DNA from: Schmidtea nova
Lineage: Eukaryota
Length of the DNA: 64,000 nt
Assembly: GCA_044892505.1 (NCBI GenBank)
Contig: CM097883.1
Coordinates: 151,652,001-151,716,000 of the forward strand
Direction: 5' to 3'
Shown: in pieces, positions 2,899 through 23,600 of the stretch
Position numbering within the stretch: the first letter of the stretch is position 1
Layout of the letters: each line of letters starts with the position of its first letter
Notes under the pieces: generated by a model
What the model saw: the letters and a program-made list of their open reading frames with translations, nothing else
Databases searched by the model: none
Told to the model about the DNA's origin: nothing
Program-made: the position numbers and the translations under genes

Positions 2899-3287
2899 AT
2901 GTCTAAAAGTAAGTATTATTTTTAATTAACTATATTATTATTATTATTTTTTATTTAGCTTATTTATTTGAAGTAATCCTGAAGAAAATTCAAGAATTAT
3001 ATCCAAAAATAAAAGACTCTTTGGATTACTGTGCACCAGAGTTATTGGTTCATAAAATATACAAGCTTACTGGAATCAATATGGAACAATTGCTTGAGAT
3101 TCACTATGATATGGTTCTTGGATCAAATGCTAAATGCATTGAAAATTGCATAGTTTGCAATGATTCACTGAGAGTATCCTGTGTAAACGGATGTGCATGC
3201 TGTCACGATTTTAAAAGAGATCATTCGGTGCATATCTTAATGTCAGAAATGCGTAAAGCATATTATAACGACATTTATAATTTATAA
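2899..3287 (+). CDS. Spliced Cys-rich small protein of unknown function (exons 2899-2908, 2959-3287), 112 aa
   Basis: ATG TCT AAA A|gtaagt...tttag|CT gives an open frame joining the 3021 ORF. Cys cluster CIENCIVC...SCVNGCACCH. A homologous copy lies at ~16518-16715. Confidence 0.65.
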
Positions 3288-3305
3288 TAAAGTTTTGTGA
3301 TTTAG

Positions 3306-4170
3306 TTGTTCTTTATTTCAAAATTTTTCATAGTTTTTTCTAAGTTTGTTATTATTATTTTAAAAATTTTTCTAAGTTTTTTCAAAGTTTGTTATTATTA
3401 TTATTTTACAAAAATTTTTCTAAGTTTATTCAAAGTTTGTTATTATTTTTATTTTTCTAAGTTTATTATTATTATTATTTTAAAAATTTTTCTAAGTTTT
3501 NNNNNNNNNNNNNNNNNNNNNNNNNNNNNNNNNNNNNNNNNNNNNNNNNNNNNNNNNNNNNNNNNNNNNNNNNNNNNNNNNNNNNNNNNNNNNNNNNNNN
3601 NNNNNNNNNNNNNNNNNNNNNNNNNNNNNNNTTCAAAGTTTATTATTATTATTATAATTATTATTATTATAATTATTATTATTATTCAAACTGAACCGAA
3701 AATATAAAAGTTTATAAAAATAAATTAAAATAAATATAAATTAATTTAAATAAATTAAAAATAAATATAAATTATTAAATATAAATTAATTAAAATAAAT
3801 TAAATATAAATTAAAATTAAAATAAATATAAATTATTAAAAATAAATAAATTAAAATAAATTAAAAATAAATATAAATTAAAATAAATAAAAAAAATAAA
3901 TTAAAATAAATTAAAAATAAATTAAAATAAATAAAAATAAATTAAAAATAAATAAAATAAATAAAATAAAATAAAGACTTCATTTAAACAAAATAATAAA
4001 TTAAATTGACTTCATTTAAACAAAAAATTTAAATTTAAAAAAATCACTTCATTTAAACAAAATAAAAAATTCACTTTATTTAAACAAAATAAAAAATTAA
4101 AAAATTTCACTTTATTTAAACAAAAAAAATTTTTTAGGGGGGGTAAAAAATTTTTTAGGGGGGAGGAGGG
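3306..4170. repeat. AT-rich tandem arrays of the Polinton terminal repeat region (includes N-gap 3501-3631)
   Basis: Repeated ttttctaagttt...attattatt units, aaataaattaa tracts, several cacttcatttaaacaaaa-like units and G-runs next to the terminus. Confidence 0.65.
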
Positions 4171-4202
4171 GTCCTGTTCTTGGGCGCTCCCCCTACTCTA
4201 CT

Positions 4203-4982
4203 TACCTGATATAACAGAAACAGGCGAATCATCCGATGTACTTGTAAATAGTGACACTCACACGATTTCCTCAACTGTCATAGCGGATCCGTTATTTATA
4301 GACTTGCAAAAAAGAATATCTTCCATTATGACAGTTCCAAGCCCGAAAGACATTTCCAAGGAATCATTGCAGTTAAATAAAGATTTCAAATCATTTGAAT
4401 CTACCAAAGAACTTACGCCAAATCTAGAAAAATTATATAAAGCATTATTAACGATTAAACCCACTTCAACTGCAAGTGAAAGTGTATTTAGTGTTGCTAA
4501 TAATTTTTGCACCAAAATTAGAAATTCTATGCACCACAATACACTTGATGCGTTAGTTTTCTTAAAATATTATTTTTTAAATAATATATAAAAAATGTGT
4601 GTGATATTTTATTTTAAAAGTAATAAGTATTGTAAATTTCTCTTTTTCTTACATTTTGATATTTTTGTTCATTATGATGAATTTTGTTGTATATTTTTTA
4701 CAATGTACGTATAACTTCTCTTGTTCACCGACTTTGAAAACAAAAATAAAAGAATTATTTCCTCTTTACGTGTTTCATTACCTATTTATATTTATTGATT
4801 ATATCTATTTTTAAACAATCAAACTATTAACATATAATTTTAACAAATTTTAACATTTTTTTTAATTTTGCAAATTACTTACTTGATTTTCTGAGGATGG
4901 TTTTAACCGGTTAACCGGTTTTTGATACGTAAAATACCCGAAAACCGGTTTGTGCTTTTCCTCCGGTTATTTAGATGCCCTA
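4203..4982 (+). mobile_element. hAT DNA transposon 3' fragment (dimerization domain + right terminal repeat)
   Basis: LLTIKPTSTASESVFS...IRNSM hATC motif, subterminal AACCGGTT repeats, and terminus ...TTAGATGCCCTA (TAGGG-type TIR) at 4982. Confidence 0.8.
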
Positions 4983-6832
4983 GGTGAAGGTGTTAAAGTT
5001 GATGAAGCTAAAATCGAAGCAATAAAAGGGTTTCAAAGACCAAAATGTTTAAAACAATTAAGGAGTTTCTTAGGACTATGTAATTATTACAGAAAATTTA
5101 TAAAGAATTATTCAAAATTTTCACGAATATTAGAATCGATGTGTGGAAACAATAAAGACAAATTAGTTTGGTCACAAGAATGTGAAGAAAGTTTTGAGGA
5201 ATTGAAGAAAGCATTAGCAACTACACCTGTTCTAACATATCCTGATTATAAGAAAGAATTTATTCTGGATACAGTTGCTAGTTTCGACACCATAGGAGCT
5301 GTTCTGCCACAAATTGATGATTTAGGTAATGAACGTGTTATTGCCTATGGTTCACATACGATGAGTAAACATGAAATAGGATACTGTATCATGAGAAAGG
5401 AACTTCTAGCAATTTATTACTTTGCACAGCATTTTAAGCCTTATCTTTACGGAAAGCGATTCCAGCTAAGAACGGACCACAAAGCTATAACATTTATGAT
5501 GACAACTAAAAAGCCTATAACAGCACAATTTCAGACATGGATAAACTTCTTGAGTAGTTTAGATATGGATATTAAATATCGAAAAGGAACGGACCATTCG
5601 AACGCTGATGCGTTATCGAGAGATAAATGTGGGAGATGTACTCAGTGTATGGAAATTCATAAAGATCCAAAAACAGAAAAAGTAAAAACCAGATTGTTGG
5701 CAATGACAGCTGCTAAATAAGGATTTCAATGGCAAAAAGGTAATGAAGAGATAGAATTTATGAGAAAAACAATTAATAAAAATGAGACTACAAGATTTAA
5801 AATCGACGAAGATTTAATTTTAACAAGAGAAAATAAAATTTGGATTCCAAAAGAAAATAGAATTGAATTTGTGAAAAGCATGCACAAAATGTTGTGTCAC
5901 GCTGGGTGTAAGAAGGTAATCGATTATATTAAAGTTAATTACGATATGGAAGAATTAAATACAATCGTGACTCAATATATACAAAGTTGTGAAATATGGC
6001 AGAAAAGAAAAACTTTGACAACAAAAACAAAAGAAATAATTGTAAAAACAGAAGTTGTGGAACCTTTTGAAGTTAAAGCGATAGATTTTTGTGAACCTTT
6101 ACAGACGAACATTCATGGAAAAAAATATATTTTGGGAATTATTGACATGTGTAGTCGATACATTTCGTTAACAGTAGTTGCAAAACAAGATGAAAAAACT
6201 ACAGCGGATACTATTATGAAATTCTGGATATTAAAATATGGGGCACCTAGAATTATTCAAGTTGATTGTGGCAAAATATTTGAGTCTAACTTGATAAAAG
6301 AGTTGACAAAGAATCACAATATACAGCTACAATTTTCGAGCCTTTATCATCATAATACTAATGGTTTGATTGAAAGACAATTTCGAACAATACGAAATTT
6401 TATCAGTGCGTCATTAAAAGACAAACTTAAGAGGAATTAAGTTGAAGTATTACCTGAAATCGAATTTACTTTAAATGCAACTATTCAAAGCACAATTGGA
6501 AAGAGCCCCTCAGAAGCAGTATTTGGTTTCCGGATATCTAGAGAATGTAACAATAATAATAGAAGATACAACGATAGAAGTAAAATAGTGGACGAAATAC
6601 AATCAAAACAAAGAAATTTAAGTTATAAAAATGAGAACCAGATACACCGAAAATTTGATATAAATGAAGAAGTTTTGGTTAAAATAGATGTGAGAAAAAA
6701 TGAGGAAGACCGATATATCGGACTTTTACGGTTGTTAGAAAGATACATGAGAATAGCTATGAATTACGAGACAGAGAAGGAAAAATGATGGTGCGCAACA
6801 TTGAATGGCTAAAATCTTTTCAACAATGGGTA
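4983..6832 (+). pseudogene. Ty3/Gypsy pol 3' part (RT connection, RNase H, H2C2 zinc finger, integrase) with in-frame stops
   Basis: LRSFLGLCNYYRKFI, RKELLAI, RTDHKAI, HSNADALSR, HKMLCHAG, IIDMCSRY, QVDCG, NGLIERQFRTI. Confidence 0.92.
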
Positions 6833-7038
6833 TGTTAGGGATATTGAATTAACTAATTTATAAATAACATATATTGTATTATAAGTAATCAAATTTAGTA
6901 TATAGTCAAATTATTATAAGTATAGATGCTAGCACGCATAATTGTCGTTATTATTTAATTGATTGATTCGCCATTTTAAATTTGTTCGAATAAGACAAAT
7001 TATTACGGAAGCAGTTTTTATTTGAATATAATTTAACA
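6833..7038 (+). repeat. 3' LTR of the Gypsy element (~206 bp)
   Basis: Bounded by TGTTA...TAACA inverted termini, immediately downstream of the integrase end. Confidence 0.65.
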
Positions 7039-7949
7039 ACAACCAATCTTTAATTATTAACACATGCTATATGTGAATATTGAATCAAATTTTCAACTTT
7101 TAGTTTAAGTAATAAGCATAAAATCTTTTCTTTTACATAGACTGATATGATTGGCCTACGTTGATTCACAACCTAGACACTCTACAACGTTACGCTTGAG
7201 TGATTGCAAATATCATCTACAGATCGCTTTTAATATTGACTGATTTCTTTAGCATTCCAATCGCTTCCGATTCATCAATCCCTTCCACTTGTGTTAGATT
7301 TACCGTTGGATATATTGTTAGTCAACCATGACAGGATACATTTTTTCTGATTTTATTTGTATTTGATTTACATTAATGATTTGATTTACAGTAATTATTC
7401 TTAAATATTTGTTTCATTGATTTATATATTTTAAATTATTACATAAAGAAGTAGAATAAATTTGTTATTTTCATCATTTTCTGTTATTTCATGGGGTTCT
7501 ATTATCGCCTTTTGTGAAGCGTGAAGGTACACAGAGAAGATAAAAAATAAAAAATAGTCGATTTCATCGACCTATACTTCGTTATGATCTTTATACGAAA
7601 GATTTGTTCCCTCACTTCCTTAGGAATCATTATTAATTATTGTGGATGTGCTCAAACTTGCTCACGAGACTCTTTCAACATACTCCTCGCATTCTAAAGT
7701 CGTTAAAATTCGCAACAAAATTTTCTCTCGGATGTAATGTGTTTTGGTGAAATAATATTCATGATATTGACTTCAGCTTTCGTCATAATACATAAATTCG
7801 CGACTACACAAATATTCTTAGTTATCTTTAGTATTTATCGACATCCGTTAAAATAATTCACTGTTCTTTTTTATATGTCGTGTGTATATATAGAATTTGT
7901 TCTAATATTTAAAGGAGCTTTAATTTGAAAAAAAATAATAACTGTTGCT

Positions 7950-13690: not shown

Positions 13691-16517
13691 AAATTATTTT
13701 TCAAGATCAAGATCATCCTCAACATATAAGAAAGAATAATATTTTTTGTCAGAGTAGATGGAGTTCAAAATTTACCCTTGAGAGGGCAGTCTCATCGGTT
13801 ATATACGCCTCATAATAGTAACATTTTGAAACCTTTTGAAGTTATTGCTGAATTTGATCCGACAATGAAAGAACATATAAGACTTATAAAAGCAAATGAA
13901 ATTCATAACCATTATTTAAGAAAAAATATTCAGAATGAGATTATTCAACTTTTGAGCAAAAAGATAAAACAGAAAGTGATAAATGATTTAACAAATGCAA
14001 AATATTACTCTATAATTCTCGATTGCACACCAGACGTCAGTCATAAAGAACAGGTGACAATGATTGTTAGATTTTGTTAAAGGAAATGAAGCAACTACTG
14101 ACAAACTTTCAGAATTTCCTATCAATGAACATTTTTGGATTCGTAGAACTTGAAAAATCTACAGGTGCAAGTATGGTGGAAATTTAACTTAAAGAACTAT
14201 CAGTACTATCAGATTAAGAAATTTATCTATATGAGATGACATGGCTATGATAGTGAAGCAAACATGCGGGGAATACATAATGGTGTCCAAGCAAGAGTTA
14301 GAGAGCTAAATTGAAGCCAATTGTCCCGTGCAATGCACATTCATTGAATTTGGTAGTTAATGATGTATTAAACTGTTGTTTGGAAGCATTAACGTTTTTT
14401 GATTTAATTCAATATACATAAACTTTTTTTCTGCATCAACACATCGCTAGAATGTATTGTTAGAACATGTCAAAAACAAAGAAGCTGTAGGTTTAACTGT
14501 TAAAAAGTTATGCACAACATGCTGGGAAAGTCAAGTTAATGTTGTGAAGGTAATTCGATACCTAACAGTTGAAATTTACGATACACTCGTTTCAATTGCT
14601 GACGTTTCACTTACTGGACAACACGGAACCCAGTCAAGTGTAGAAGCTAAGGGAATTGCACAAAAAATGTTCGATTTAAAATTTGTTTGTTCATTAGTGA
14701 TTTGGTATGATATTTTATTTGAGGTCAATATATCTAGCAAAACATTTCCAAAAGAAAGATCTTGATTTAACGAAATCAATTCAGCAATTGAATGCAACTA
14801 AAACTATGCTCCAGAATTACAGAACAGTTGAAGGATTTTTAAAGCAATTACAACAGCTAAATCATTGGCAGAAAACTTGGTATTGAGTGTACTTTCTATA
14901 TGGAAAGAGATAATTTGACTATGAAGTTTTAGATGATGCAATTCTTGAGCCAGAAAAGAATTTTAGAGTAAATATTTTTAATCAGATCATTAGTACCGCA
15001 TTTCAATCAGTTAATGATTGGTTTATGCCGTTAACATCTCACAGTGACTTATTTGGATTTTTGTATGACATTAAAAATGTGAAAAAAAGAAGTTTTCAAA
15101 GATTGCATGGACCCTCAATTAGTTTTAAAATCTGAAAACGAGAATTCAGCAGACATTAAAATAACAGAATAGTGCTGAGTTATTTGCTTTATTAAGAAGA
15201 ATTACTGAAACATCAAGCCCCAGAGTTATATTTGACTATCTATGTGGAATGGGCTTGGTTGCTCTTTCTACAAACATATATGTCGCATTGCGAATTTTGC
15301 TTACACTCCCGATAACAGTTGCGAGTGCAGAAAAAAGCTTATCGAAGCTCAAACTCATAAAAATATATCTTCGTTCTAACATGTGTCAGGATCGTTTGGT
15401 TGATTTAGCTACCATATCTATAGAGAGCCGATTGCAGAATAGTTGGATATGACCGAAATAATTCAGGAGTTTGCTTCTGCAAAAGCTAAAAAACATATTT
15501 TTTATAAAATCAACTAATAAATACTTTTAGTGTTTTATAAATATACCATTTCAAACATTTTTGTTTTTCATTACTTTTTAAAGCAAAAAAGACTTCTTAA
15601 AATCAACTTGTAGGAATATACAATAAACTAATGAATTGAATTCATAATATTTATTAAGTAACAAATTGCTTAATGATTCTGTCGACGAAATATGCAATCC
15701 AGTTGATGGTAGGACTGTCGTTGAGTTTGACGAGATTCCAGATACGAACTGTTTTGTCAATGTTTCAGAAACAGTGTTTGTGATAGTGTTTTTAAGTTGG
15801 AGTAAATTAACTTCGCAGTAGAACTAGTTGAAACGGCATTTCGAAAAGCCGATTTTGATTCACTGGTGGATATAGTTAATGATGTTTGACCATATGAGAA
15901 TCATGTTAAAGAAACTATTGTTTTTGGTTTCTTTTCGATTGAGAGAGAAATAAATGTTGAACTTGTCATTTTTTGAATATCGGGAAAAAGATGTCAAAAA
16001 AAAGTGCATATTAAAACAATGCCATTTAAACTCTCATTCAATAATTATTTAATAAGTTAATTAATTATAAAAAAATTTATAATCCAAGGCACTACACAAC
16101 TACCTATAGGCCTATTAAAAACTATTAACTTTTATAAAGTTGTTGTTGAAGACTTGTAATAAAATTATAAAAATTTCACATTTTCACATTTTGAATTTAT
16201 CCTTCAAAATAAATACAAATTAAAGATTTTTCTTAGAAAACTGAACCCAATAAAGGAGGCATTTCTATCCTTGCCTATAGGACAAAATTATCTAAGGCCG
16301 TCACTGTTCTTTAATGAGTATTTTGTTAATTTGGTTTACTTGTGTTTTTTGTACTTACTTCTTGCTAATGTTTATATTAAACTTTACTTTACTTTTACTT
16401 AATTTTTTCCTGTTTCTAATAATTTTTGTTTATTTGGTGTTTACTGACATATTTAAGTATACTTCTTGCGCGGTCTCTACATGCTATATCAGCGCTCACT
16501 TCCAGATTGATGGGATT

Positions 16518-16715
16518 AGTCTATAAAATTTATAATTTTACCGGAATCAATATCGAGGAGCTATTAGAAATACACTATGATATAGTCTTTGGATTCGGTG
16601 TCAAATGTGTAGAAAGTTGCGTTGTTTGAAAAGATACTACGAGAGTATCCTGCACCAGAGGCTGTGTTTGTTGTCACAATTAAATCGATTCAAAGACAAT
16701 AATCGGTCCATATTC
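16518..16715 (+). pseudogene. Degenerate paralog of the Polinton Cys-rich gene (2899-3287)
   Basis: KIYNFTGINIEELLEIHYDIVFG..KCVESCVV*..TRVSCTRGCVCCH aligns with KIYKLTGINMEQLLEIHYDMVLG..KCIENCIVC..LRVSCVNGCACCH. Confidence 0.8.
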
Positions 16716-17025
16716 AAATAGGGTATACTTCTTGCGCGGTCTCTACGTGCTCTGTCCGCGCTCACTTCCAAATTCACGGGGTTCAGTTTTTGTCCAACAC
16801 TATTGTGTTTATTTTTGCGATTTCTTGCGTTATATTATTTTAATTACTAATGTTTATTGATCTTCGTGTACTATGTTCTACTTGTATGATATTTTTCTTT
16901 TCGTGGATTTTGAATTCAATTATTACAGTGTGTATGTCTTTTCGACGCATTAAAACAATAAATCCACTTCTGTTAGTCTAACAATGGTGTTGGAGTTTGT
17001 TATTCTGATACACAAGAAAACGATT

Positions 17026-17027
<2 letters not shown>

Positions 17028-17097
<70 letters not shown>
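17028..17097. repeat. (TA)n microsatellite
   Basis: About 35 perfect AT dinucleotides. Confidence 0.95.
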
Positions 17098-17100
<3 letters not shown>

Positions 17101-17600
17101 TATGGAAAAAGACGAAAATTTTGAAATCGCGTTATTCAAGACTGGAATGCTCTTTAGATAGAATATTTTAACAAGTTCTTATGAAAATGAATGAAAAATT
17201 GTTTATTAACAAATGGACTATGTGAAAAATACGCATGTCGGTCATGCCTTTTACTGTGATAAGTAGGCTCCTTGAAAACTGTTGGCTAATATAAAATATC
17301 CGATAAATGGAATATGGAATAGGGTATCTTTTTCCTTATCCACAAGAGGACCGTTGAGTTTCTAAAGGTTCATTATAGAGCTAATTAAATGGAGTGAAAC
17401 TATTTTTAAAATGCAATTTTGAATCCCAAAATAATCACACACACACAATTTTGTAAATTGCTTAAAATAAATCAAATCTCAAATTTTAATCACAAAATTA
17501 CACTAATATATTTCTAGTTTTATTATCTTACTATTATTATCATTAAGATTGTATCAAGTAATAAGTTTTCTAATACAATTGAATGTTTAAAAATAATCTT

Positions 17601-20600
17601 TTATGTAAATTGAGGCCTAGCCGACGCGTGCTTTTTAAGCACATCGAAAAATTTATTTTTTTTCACGGCTGGTTTCAGTATTTGAAAGGAACACATTAGC
17701 GTCTCGTCTACCGACATCATGGCACCCGCATTATCAAACTCGCCACAATAATTTGGGGCTGAAAATATCGTTACCAGTTTTCTTTTGGCAAAAAATTCAT
17801 ATCCATCTTCGACAACTTGATGAGCTCTTAAGAAAAGATTTATATGAAAGAGAAATATATATATTTCATAGAAGGATTTTATTATTTCTTTGAGTAGAAT
17901 AAAATATATTAACACCAAATGTTTGGGACTCTGGATTAAAAAGGGTGTTTGAACCATTAAAGACGCACGACGCGAATAACATTTTATTTCCATCAAACAA
18001 TTTGTCCCTCAAAACAGCATCAATTCGCTTTACAAAGCATTCCAGACAAATAGATTCCATTGCCGAATAAGAAACCAATCGGCCTCCAAATGTTTCATTT
18101 TTTAGCAAATAAGTGAGCAACTCGAGTTTGTTATTATTAAATTGTTGTTTGTAACGAACACTACGTAAAAGAATAGAAAAAGGCTCTCTGTGATTTGTTT
18201 GGCTATTGATTTGAGACCCAGAAAATCAGCGCGCTTCAGGGATTTGGATATCGTTATTGAGCTTCAATATCAAGCTTTGCTCTGAATACAAACTCCAATA
18301 CGATAAGATGAGTTCGACAATATCCTGCTCAGCGATCGGCAAACTATCCAAAGAAAAGGTTTCAGTTCCAGATTGCTGTGGAATATAGAATTTAGATGAT
18401 ATCATTTGATATGTTGCATAAATGTCATCATATTGTATTGGAAATAGAACATATCGTTTCTCGTTTGATGTCAATAATGGCTCATTTCTGTCTAATATTT
18501 CAGCTCGCCGCTCCTTCGCAAAATATTCAGAAAAACTCCAACCGATAGCGGAACACAAAAACATCTCCCAACTTCCAAAAATTGCATCGCTAACAAAACC
18601 ATAAATCATAACTCATAAAATTCATAATAATCATAAAATCAATTCAATCTTCAATATCAGTTCATTAAACATATACAACAAGCCATGCGCACACAAGCGC
18701 CAACAACACCACAATTCATGCGCAAACATGGGCCGAAACAAAGGGGAATTAAGGTGGTGGTGGAGAAAGTTAATTTAAAATTTACTTATTAACCTGTTAA
18801 CCGAGCGTGACATATAAATACGTCAAACGTAAACAGTATCGGGTACGGGTAGGACATATGAATACGTCCTTGAAATATATGTTGTGCCCTAGAACGGGCG
18901 GGACATATATTTCCGAGCAACAAAAGTATTAGTCATGCGTACAGTCTTCATGCAAATACGCGTGCCCGTTGTGTGTTGCGCAATTGAAGTCGAGAGCGCC
19001 CGGTTAACAGGTTAAATATCATTAAAATCTTTAATCTGTTTCACTTTAGATTCTTTTTATTTGATTTTTAAAAATGTTTTTCACATTATCAAAATATTTT
19101 CTCTTAAAATAAATAATATAAATAAAATAAATAATAGATGCAAAATTTATTTCTTTGTTTTCGGATGACTGCCTGATTAAATGAAATCCAAAATGTGATA
19201 TTTCTAATGACAGACCGATGGTGATACAAATGATTCTCTCTCTCGCTCTCTCTCGCTCTCTCTTGCTCTCTCTCTCTTGCTCTCTCTCGCTCTCTCTTTT
19301 TCTCTCTCTCTCTCGCTCTCTCTTTTTCTCTCTCTCTCTCGCTCTCTTATGTCTCTCACTCTCACTCTTAATCCAAAATGTGATATTTCTAATAACAGAC
19401 CGATGGTGATACAGATGATTCTCTCTCTCCTCTCTCCTTTTACTCTTTCTCTCTCTCCTGTCTCTCACTCTCTCTCTTTCTCTCTCTCCCAATCCAAAAT
19501 GTGATATTTCTAATGACAGAACGATGGTGATACAGGTGATTCTCTCTCTTCTCTCTTCTCTCTCTCTCTTTTTCTCTTTCTCGCTCTCTCTCGCTCTCTC
19601 ATGTCTCTCACTCTCAATCCAAAATATGATATTTCTAATAACAGACCGATGGTGATACAGATGATTCTCTCTCTCCTCTCTCCTCTCTTTCTCTCTTTCT
19701 CTTTCTCTTTCTCTCTCACTCTCTCCTGTCTCTCACTCTCACTCTCAATCCAAAATGTGATATTTCTAATGGCAGACCGATGGTGACACAGGTGATTCTC
19801 TCTCTCACTCTCTCGCTCACTTTCTCTCTCACACACATTTTCAAGAATAGGCCGAAAACCTGTGATTGCACCAGTTTATTGATCAATTATCATCGGGTTA
19901 TAAAAAATTTATCTTTCCAGAAAAATATTATCCGAATTTTCATTTAAAATTGTTTAAATTTGTTAAAAAATAAGTTTGTTATAATCTTTCAAGTTAATTG
20001 GTAGTTGGATTATTTTATTAGTATGGGTATGGTTAAAACATTTGAGATTTTGGCACACGTTTTAGATGGGAAAATATTAAAAATAGAAGGTAAAATCTAA
20101 ATTTTACCTTGACAGGCTACAGAGAGCCAGTGAAATCTATTATTTATTATATTAATGATAAATACTCAAAAAAACTAAAAAAGATGAAAATTTTGAATTT
20201 AAATATAAATGAAGAGATATTTACCTACATATGAGATCAAGGTCTTGAACTTGGAGAAATTTGTCAACTACGTCTGATCCAAATGTATGACTAACCCCTC
20301 TTTCGTTTTCTGCCCAACCAACAATGTCTCTATCTGGATCAGACCACAACAAATCACATATTAAACCATCATCTGGTACTTCTCTTGGCCTACTGATTTC
20401 TTTAATTTGTTTTAAACTGCGCAATTCTGGTGATAAACCACCGTGAAAACATATTATTTTTTCATCAATTAGCGCAGCAAACGGTAACGCGTTGAAACAA
20501 TCTGTGAAAATTTTCCATAGCCGTATATTATAGCGACGCTTACACTCATCGTAGAATCCATAGATTCTGTTAATTGCAGCACTTTCGTGATTGCCTCTGA

Positions 20601-23600
20601 GAAGAAAAAAATTTTCCGGATATTTAATTTTATACGCTAATAGTAATGTTATACATTCGATAGATTGGCGTCCACGATCCACATAGTCTCCAAGAAATAG
20701 ATAATTTGAGGTTGGCGGAAATCCGCCATATTCAAACAATCTTAGTAAATCGTAATATTGTCCATGTATGTCACCTAAATCAAAACATAGAAAATTACTA
20801 TTTTAAAAATAAAAAAAAATATTACTGTCGCTTTTGAAATTAAAAAATTTATTAATATATAAAATCGAAGGATCCCAATATTTCATTGGGTAAACACAGC
20901 GCCGTACAATCGCAAGTGCAATCGTACTGGGCCCCCAATTTTTGAGGGCCACCAAATATTAAATACATTAGAAAAACTTCTCCAATACCATAAATTACTA
21001 CGAATTGAAAGAAAAAAAAACAAATTTGAAAATTAAAAATTAAAAATTCGTTTAACTTTCAAAAAAATCTTAATTTAATTTGAAACAAATATACCTAATA
21101 ATTCATTTGTTTTTTGCTTCAAATTGTTATCTTCAAATTGTTATCTTCTGTTTGTTTATTATATGATATTTTAGGTTTAACGATTCGTTTATATATTTAA
21201 TAAATTATAATTTTCACTTTTCAAATAAAATTTGTGTTAACGAACATAGTTTGAAAACATATACATATATTCAAATTTATAGAAGGAATACATCAGGTGT
21301 CAAAATTCAAATTAAAAAAAATTTTTTTTTAGTTTCTGCACAGGGCCCCCAAAAGTTACAGCACGGCGCTGGGTAAACAGAAGCTTTTAATATTTTTTGG
21401 ACCAACCCTTCTGAAGCATCTTTGTGCTAGTCAAACTCTCCGTAGTTTACCGTTGGATATATTTCATTGCAACATTGAAAGAGTTATTTAATTTAATTAA
21501 AAAATAAATTAATTACAGGCCACAGGTTGAAAATATCAGTAAATTTGTATGTCATTTTCACTTAGTGATTCTATTAGGTCAATGAATTAGTCCCGACTTC
21601 TCATTAAAGAATTCACATTTAATTAAAACTCCCTCAAAATTGATGAATTATCAATTAAAAAGTGCAGTCGATAATATACACATGCGGTATTGCATTTTAT
21701 TCATGTTCAACATGAAAAAAAAAGAAATTTGACAAGTTTATAGAATAGATATTGTCGGGTTCATAACTATCAAGGGCTGGTATTTGAAGTTAAAGAGGAG
21801 TGATGTTTGTTTAGAGAACTTTGCCAGATCAAGACACCATCAAGAAACAAAAAATGTTCAACTTCAGGTACTACTTAAAGTAAATGATACCCGATTCCAA
21901 AATTCCAAAGAATTATAATTATTCATTCAACAATTATTTCACAATAAACCATCCACATTAATCCATTTATGATCGTTTCATCATTATGGACTAACTTGAA
22001 AATATCTTTATTTCTTTACCTATGTTTAGTTTATAAATTCGGATTTGAGTTTAAAATCATTATTTGAATCAACAAATATAATACAGTTCTGGATTAAAGT
22101 TAAAAGTGAATATTCATATTACACAAGAAGGCAATCTGAATCTTATTCCACTTTTCGACAAATGACTTGTGCGAGACTGCATTCTCAGCAATGTGTGCAA
22201 TAAAAACAAATCAACGAAATCATTTGGCTGTTAGTAGTTGGAAGTGAGCCCGCCAGATATAGGTCAAGACCCCCTCTAGAAATATTTTTATGTAGGTCAC
22301 TTTAAGGTCATTTTAAGGTCAAATTTTTTCGCTTAAGGTCACTTTGAGAACACTTTAGGTCAAAAAAAGTAGGTCAAGGTCGATTTAATGACACTTTAAG
22401 GCGAATTTAAGGTCAAAACTATGGTTTAAGGACACTTTAAGGACAAAAAACAGGTCAATGTCGTTTTAAGGACACAATAAGGTAAAAAAGTATGCCGATT
22501 TAAGGTCACGATAAGGACGAAATAAGTAGGTCAAATATAATTTTCAAATTTTTTTAATATCAGAAATAAGTAGGTCAAATATTTTTAAGTTGCTATGACA
22601 ACGAATTAAGTAGGTCAAATATAAAACTTGAAAATTTTGCTATGTCAGAATTAAGTATGTCAATAATAATTTTCAAAATTATTCTAAGTTATAATAAATT
22701 AAAAATTTTTTCTATGTCAGAATTAAGTAGATAGAAGTTTTTATATTTGACCTACATAATTCAGACAGAAAATTATCTATTTGACATACTTTATTCTGAC
22801 TTAGAAAAAATATATTTCACCTACTTTGTTGACCTTAAAATATCCTTAATGTACCCTTAATTCTGACTTTGAAAAATTTCGAAATTTATTATTAACCTAC
22901 TTTATTTTGACATAGAAAAAATTTTAGAAATTATTATTGACTTACTTAATTTGTCCTTATCATGACCTTAAATCGGAATACTTAATTCCGACATAGAAAA
23001 TATTTTTAATTTATTATAACTTTTAATAATTTTATATTTGACCTACTTATTTCTGACAGACAAATTTTAAAAATTATATTTGACCTACTTAATTCTGACA
23101 TAGAAAATTTTTTTAATTTATTATAACTTTGAATAATTTTGAAAATTATTATTGACCTACTTAATTTAGACTTAGAAAAATTTTCAAATTTTTTATATTT
23201 GACTTACTTATTTCTGACATAGAAAAATTTTTTGTGACCTACTTAATTCTGACAGAAAAAACTTTTAATTTATTATAACTTAGAATAATTTTGAAAATTA
23301 TTATTGACCTACTTAATTCTGACAGAAAAATTTTCAAGTTTTATATTTGACCTACTTAATTCTGACAGAAAAATTTCAAAACTTATTATTGACCTACTTA
23401 ATTCTGACAGAAAAATTTTCAAGTTTTATATTTGACCTAATTAATTCGTTGTCATAGCAACTTAAAAATATTTGACCTACTTATTTCTGACAGAAAAAAT
23501 TTGAAAATTATATTTGACCTACTTATTTCGTCCTTATCGTGACCTTAAATCGGCATACTTTTTGACCTTGTAGTGTCCTTTAAACAACCTTGACCTACTT

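Follow-up and report, generated by a model that had tools for sequence, protein, structure and literature searches.

A dead ribonucleotide reductase R2 fragment in a PP1 intron of Schmidtea nova is probably carried by a solo LTR of a BEL/Pao retrotransposon

Capture of host mRNA is known from maize Bs1 and from the transduction of oncogenes by retroviruses, and in mouse mammary tumour virus (MMTV) an open reading frame (ORF), sag, is located inside the long terminal repeat (LTR). In animals LTR-mediated retroposition, the capture of host mRNA by LTR retrotransposons, has also been described (Tan et al. 2016, PMC5131818). The locus analysed here lies in a stretch of 64,000 nucleotides (the window) of the planarian Schmidtea nova (GCA_044892505.1, contig CM097883.1, positions 151,652,001 to 151,716,000). 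An intron of the PP1 gene contains a 247-codon frame that resembles the small subunit (R2) of ribonucleotide reductase (RNR), and the initial annotation took it for a nested, recently broken pseudoenzyme gene or for a product of UGA recoding. The locus is, with high confidence, something else: a solo LTR of a BEL/Pao retrotransposon inserted into the PP1 intron in the sense orientation, flanked by a CCCTT target-site duplication and bearing part of the spliced cDNA of a catalytically dead R2 paralog.

The features of the locus are itemized in Table 1. Most of the frame falls within a dispersed repeat. DNA searches of the genome (1.25 Gb, three chromosomes of 612, 456 and 161 Mb) returned 812 first-look candidates, and at least 40 scored copies of the unit have the same sharp boundaries, with identities of 83-96%. 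Read on the sense strand the unit starts with TGTTTCGG and ends with TTCAAACA, and so has TG..CA termini. Identical 5-bp sequences flank ten of the copies, CCCTT in the window and nine others elsewhere (including AATGT, GATAC, AATAT and ATTAT).

At four loci (L013, L017, L018 and L022) the same unit is placed as a 3′ LTR, directly after the purine tract GGGGGGAA(A). In L013 this tract is preceded by a pol region with Peptidase_A17 (the Pao peptidase), RVT_1, Integrase_H2C2 (the integrase zinc domain) and DUF5641; the pol region is itself a high-copy family with ~91% identity. At a further locus, L016, the unit is placed as a 5′ LTR and is followed by TT and a stretch resembling a primer binding site (PBS), GGTAGCAGAGCGTGGTT. 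This is nearly equal to the TGGTAGCAGAGCGTGGTT that follows the 5′ LTR of a full-length BEL/Pao element (L024/L029), and related internal sequence comes after it. The 5′ and 3′ placements of the R2-bearing unit were thus observed at different loci. LTR positions 2-129 are 75-86% identical in comparisons with the L024 and L029 LTRs and of L007 with L029, while the remainder differs. The copy in the window is a solo LTR, because there is one target duplication and no internal sequence. A DNA transposon making 5-bp duplications (Transib-like) was considered and rejected, since the unit adjoins a PBS and a purine tract as well as BEL/Pao pol.

Table 1. Positions of the features in the window (numbered from its first nucleotide)
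Feature	Position	Strand	Basis or remark
Solo LTR (795 bp) of a BEL/Pao retrotransposon; sense is the minus strand of the window	17946..18740	-	shared sharp boundaries, TG..CA
Target-site duplication CCCTT, upstream copy	18741..18745	-	identical flanking 5-mers
Target-site duplication CCCTT, downstream copy	17941..17945	-	identical flanking 5-mers
5′ part of LTR, common with the sister full-length BEL/Pao LTR that carries an ANAPC2 fragment instead of R2	18613..18740	-	
Captured cDNA: last 13 nt of parent exon 1 abutting parent exon 2, intron absent	18046..18517	-	
Second block of homology to parent exon 2, past the 48-nt in-frame deletion	17998..18033	-	
Private TGA nonsense codon	18226..18228	-	LTR family TGG, parent TGT
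247-codon composite frame (leader and 3′ end of the LTR with the captured R2 fragment between them, then 80 nt of intron)	17866..18609	-	
PP1 exon 3 of the host gene	17620..17826 (approximate limits)	-	
PP1 exon 2	20260..20790 (approximate limits)	-	includes motif DLLWSDP

Some observations were made on the surroundings of individual copies. Most LTR copies, the one in the window excepted, lie within (ATT)n or (AAT)n microsatellites and have ATTAT-type duplications, as seen in the flanks of L009-L012, L015, L017, L020 and L022; these locations suggest a target preference of the integrase. In L018 (G000:C3:124967863-124975616, positions 3001-4754) two inverted R2-bearing LTRs are ~300 bp apart and a third fragment of 138 bp lies nearby, the arrangement being that of a nested or rearranged insertion. 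L013 (G000:C3:5147368-5154152) has at 480-1175 of its minus strand an ORF that by eye resembles a fragment of a protein-primed B-family DNA polymerase of the Polinton/Maverick type.

The origin of the R2 segment is seen at its 5′ boundary. In most LTR copies the exact 13-nt end of exon 1 of a host gene is joined to exon 2, as determined by direct string comparison, at a point where the host gene has a 51-nt GT..AG intron. Since the end of exon 1 meets exon 2 without this intron, the LTR captured a spliced mRNA. From the first base of exon 2 the captured piece in the window is 95% identical to the parent gene over 459 bp (positions 6599-7057 of locus L019), and across the scored copies the identity in this block ranges over 85-95%. 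Homology to the parent ends ~39 nt short of the end of exon 2, and within it the LTR has a 48-nt in-frame deletion of a segment that is kept both in the parent and in its counterpart in Schmidtea mediterranea, the protein P0001.

The R2 frame of many copies can be followed 33 codons upstream, as far as an ATG, through a Cys-rich leader that is different from that in the window. Its continuation in the downstream direction was examined on two elements. In L016 (G000:C1:126494051-126500755, plus strand, 3714-5358) the R2 frame runs for 201 codons past the LTR, across the PBS region and into ubiquitin; beyond the first ubiquitin there are HSP90 and ubiquitin fragments and then Gag, with frameshifts between. 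L024 (G000:C1:513484500-513494499, plus strand, 3954-7565) is a young full-length BEL/Pao element with LTRs 97-98% identical, in which an ORF derived from ANAPC2 lies inside the LTR. An ORF of 992 amino acids is in the same frame as the LTR ORF and one stop apart from it, and comprises Pyr_redox_2 (glutathione-reductase-like), an HSP70 fragment (308 bits) and a whole ubiquitin, followed by Gag (DUF1759).

These arrangements would be accounted for by the following sequence of events. As in LTR-mediated retroposition, reverse transcriptase would have changed templates between the RNA of the element and a host mRNA packaged with it. An insert inside the LTR would be copied to both ends in each cycle, and could in this way have reached hundreds of sites. 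The LTR frame of intact elements, beginning at the ATG 33 codons before R2, would be read in frame through the PBS region as a polyprotein with ubiquitin and Gag. Recombination between two LTRs left the solo LTR in the PP1 intron, where a G>A change made TGG into TGA. Because the LTR frame runs into ubiquitin-Gag, selection on the master copies probably favoured an open frame and not the function of R2.

Some points weigh against this account. The copies studied in detail number only ~20. There are also partial LTR variants that match only LTR positions 195-653, 213-653 or 1-653, and the detailed set left out those ending at position 653 or starting at 195 or 213. The template switch is an inferred step. 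Three copies (L010, L004 and L014) keep the whole LTR frame of ~220 codons open, and pairwise pN/pS within the captured core is 0.82 when pooled (median 0.85); as this is slightly below 1, weak selection on the frame or on the peptide is possible in the master copies. Elsewhere in the family the frame has decayed, the other copies having 0-4 in-register stops and 1-5 frameshifting indels, and the LTR copies evolve in a nearly neutral manner.

The open frames and the pN/pS slightly below 1, together with the continuity of the frame from LTR to ubiquitin in L016 and also in the sister L024, are what would be expected if the R2 fragment were a functional cargo. It would be translated as the first part of a leader-ubiquitin-Gag polyprotein, be released from it, and either bind the R2 or R1 of the host or feed Piwi-interacting RNAs (piRNAs) against the parent gene, to the benefit of the element or of the host. 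We think this improbable. The pN/pS is near to 1 and most copies are broken; the fragment is without about one-third of the fold and, by reason of the 48-nt deletion, without part of a core helix. Moreover, the sister LTR holds the unrelated ANAPC2 in the same place, so that the identity of the cargo seems irrelevant.

Capture by a BEL/Pao LTR also accounts for the frame in the window. Translation of the minus strand gives 247 codons with a single internal stop, the TGA, between the motifs IPEAR and FSG, just as had been annotated. The frame is on the strand of PP1, whose first exon seen is at ~25100 and whose other two are given in Table 1, and it ends ~39 nt upstream of the exon 3 acceptor, in agreement with the ~40 nt first estimated. 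The resemblance to R2 (RRM2) was equally well founded. Amino acids 33-127 match human p53R2 (PDB 2vux) with E 8e-8, and the first 127 codons match RRM2 and yeast Rnr2 and Rnr4 as well in the comparison with the PDB. The R2 profile PF00268 matches weakly on the frame piece alone, and scores 32-34 bits in a six-frame search; the match ends near profile position 200, and the C-terminal third of R2 is absent. The second half of the frame on its own has no match in Pfam or PDB searches, and can be interpreted only through the parent gene, by alignment with the parent exon. The final 80 nt (17945-17866), making 27 codons, are unrelated, unique intron DNA outside the repeat.

The catalytic residues were compared in an alignment (A1) of two canonical R2 proteins, the parent exon, P0001, two more distant relatives with 48-52% identity (P0002 and P0003) and the pieces from the window. 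The first Glu ligand (of ExxH) is replaced by Gln with the His kept in the parent, P0001-P0003 and the pieces from the window. An Asp ligand is lost with a 3-residue deletion in all members of this divergent group, the radical Tyr is Phe throughout it, and the last Glu/His pair is likewise lost. The substitutions listed in the initial annotation (Glu to Gln in ExxH, Tyr to Phe, lost ligands and a missing C-terminus) are therefore real. The active enzyme requires six di-iron ligands (D, E, H, E, E, H) as well as a radical Tyr; of these the frame in the window retains one His and one Glu, and the parent and P0001-P0003 show the same pattern. The R1-binding tail is absent even from the full-length P0001, the other rows of the alignment ending before the tail region.

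The dead motif is conserved in four flatworm sequences, and on this alignment its conservation over such a distance indicates a maintained pseudoenzyme in the lineage of the parent. All of the 'pseudoenzyme' substitutions of the window copy are inherited from the parent gene. The frame had been annotated as strongly divergent and free of frameshifts through past selection as a pseudoenzyme; it is indeed R2-derived, dead and of selected ancestry, but the selection lies elsewhere, at the parent and its orthologs.

The codon at the site of the TGA is TGG in 17 of the 18 other LTR copies, CGG in the remaining one and TGT in the parent. With a family codon of TGG, the TGA represents a G>A change confined to the window copy. 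It had been placed at a conserved Cys; this is correct for canonical R2 and for the parent, but not for the LTR family. The canonical R2 gene of this animal (L001, G000:C3:100602367-100603277) has EAEAFY in place of the EARCF of most R2s and of the dead paralog, and so the 'conserved Cys' is not conserved in the animal's own active R2. The ATG of the frame is private in that most other copies have AGG or GGG; an exception is L022, with ATG. The first ~31 codons are put in frame by a 1-nt deletion that is private; hence the hydrophobic N-terminus noted at the outset is present, but is in frame just here, by way of the ATG and the deletion. The frame owes its apparent length in part to accident, namely to this ATG, the deletion and the 27 stop-free codons of intron. 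As read from its sequence the window copy is dead, and its TGA is a nonsense mutation of the ordinary kind, private to this copy.

It is consequently very unlikely that the frame is a single-copy gene nested in the PP1 intron, an R2-derived pseudoenzyme or dominant-negative protein recently broken by the TGA. A long frame with one stop, genuine homology to R2 and real catalytic substitutions would all be found in such a gene. Yet the genome contains hundreds of copies of the unit, bounded by LTR ends and target duplications, and evolution among these copies is near-neutral; both start codon and N-terminal frame are peculiar to the window copy, and the C-terminal 27 codons lie beyond the repeat.

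The missing intron and the origin from a spliced mRNA could equally have been left by a processed pseudogene of the dead R2 paralog, made by a LINE and present in the intron by chance. There is, however, no poly(A) tail or A-tract at the cDNA piece, and both of its flanks are LTR sequence common to all copies. The unit has TG..CA ends and 5-bp duplications, and a PBS or a purine tract is attached to it in full elements. A single retroposition event cannot yield hundreds of copies with identical chimeric boundaries, and we regard this origin as highly improbable.

The parent of the captured piece is a single-copy gene of four exons (G000:C2:405096500-405097514). In L019 exon 1 occupies positions 6500-6547 and, after the 51-nt intron, exon 2 occupies 6599-7192; two further short introns and exons follow. 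A search of the genome with PF00268 gave the canonical R2 on C3 (276 bits), a weaker long match at C2:405.096 Mb and ~10 short pieces that include the one in the window. The rest of exon 2, the following intron and exon 3 were found by this search at C2:405096598-405097449 alone. The exons are colinear with P0001, a protein of 282 amino acids. With parent exon 2 alone as the protein query, P0001 is 81% identical over that exon, and in two tblastn blocks the identity is ~75% and ~82%. Parent exon 2 scores 60 bits against PF00268, and P0001 scores 108 bits and matches from end to end. Directly upstream of the parent (L019, G000:C2:405090000-405099999) there is a 576-bp tandem duplication containing identical ORFs of 85 amino acids at 5445-5702 and 6021-6278.

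An identity of 95% over 459 bp might also arise in the reverse direction, the gene on C2 having been domesticated from an ORF borne by the LTR. This too is a scarcely credible reading. The C2 gene has three GT..AG introns, and that between the blocks matching R2 profile positions 1-207 and 214-271 corresponds in position to an intron of the canonical R2 on C3 (2-208 and 214-281). It has the C-terminal exon of R2, which is found in no LTR copy; its S. mediterranea counterpart (81% identical) and its relatives at 48-52% share the Q/H/F motif with it. The 48-nt deletion is in the LTR, relative both to the C2 gene and to the S. mediterranea protein.

Recoding of the TGA, with selenocysteine or by readthrough to a full-length product, has a negligible probability, for although canonical R2 and the parent both have Cys where the stop falls, the family codon is TGG and not TGY, the TGA occurs in the window copy only, and the downstream search for a selenocysteine insertion sequence (SECIS) proposed in the initial annotation gave no match to SECIS or any other Rfam family at E<=1 in 17768-19300 and nothing relevant in 16000-17727, where there was a sub-threshold match to mir-297. 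This last match lies over a (TA)n-type microsatellite at 17025-17095, and with 28 bits vs a gathering score of 90 it is an artefact of composition.

The solo LTR of a BEL/Pao element thus remains the preferred reading of the locus, and it has consequences for both annotation and experiment. It prevents a nested gene or a selenoprotein from being wrongly entered in the gene set of this planarian. In this species RNA-seq counts, in situ probes and RNA interference (RNAi) directed at the dead R2 paralog will all be confounded by the hundreds of copies, whose identity to its exon 2 reaches ~95%. The spliced junction, exact to the base, documents the capture of a host mRNA inside the LTR of a BEL/Pao element and its subsequent amplification several hundred-fold. 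The parent is of interest in its own right as a conserved R2 paralog of triclads without ligands, radical Tyr or tail, and hence a candidate pseudoenzyme. A screen in S. mediterranea included the weakly R2-like gene Smed-rrm2b-1 (E 6e-28 to RNR beta), RNAi of which led to stem-cell loss (PMC4603911), and we infer this to be the gene of P0001.

A broader proposal is that the LTRs of this BEL/Pao lineage act as swappable cargo cassettes, in which translation started within the 5′ LTR passes through the host fragment (dead R2 here, ANAPC2 in the sister) and the PBS region to Gag by way of a ubiquitin cleaved by the host. We consider it improbable. If it were true, neoblasts would make a free fragment of dead R2, and this fragment, or piRNAs from the hundreds of copies, could act on the parent RNR pseudoenzyme gene; were the parent Smed-rrm2b-1, the targeted gene would be one needed for stem-cell maintenance.

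The locus and its relatives may be compared with several known systems. Like other solo LTRs that arise by LTR-LTR recombination, the window copy is a single TG..CA LTR within one target-site duplication, and it differs from them only by its captured coding content. With MMTV sag the family shares a protein-coding frame within the LTR; here, unlike in sag, the cargo is host-derived and reads out towards Gag, and no evidence that the product has a function was found. For the parent gene, though not for the window copy, the comparator is yeast Rnr4, the inactive R2 partner of Rnr2 (PDB 1jk0 chain B). Both have the R2 fold, have lost metal ligands and have been retained by selection. Unlike Rnr4, the parent originated independently within flatworms, and is also without the radical Tyr (which is Phe) and the C-terminal R1-binding tail; P0001 scores better against p53R2 and RRM2 than against Rnr4 in the PDB comparison. 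By this analogy the parent may be the flatworm counterpart of Rnr4, a putative partner of the canonical R2.

The closest parallel is with the host mRNA capture described by Tan et al., where, as here, an intron-less piece of host mRNA is embedded in the sequence of an LTR retrotransposon. In sister elements of S. nova a single frame joins segments from several host genes (glutathione-reductase-like, HSP70, HSP90, ubiquitin and ANAPC2). Most of the described animal cases are single chimeras that were dead on arrival, unlike this planarian BEL/Pao element. The type of event is therefore known; the position of the cargo, within the LTR itself, is less usual, as is the amplification of the chimeric, still mobile LTR to hundreds of copies.

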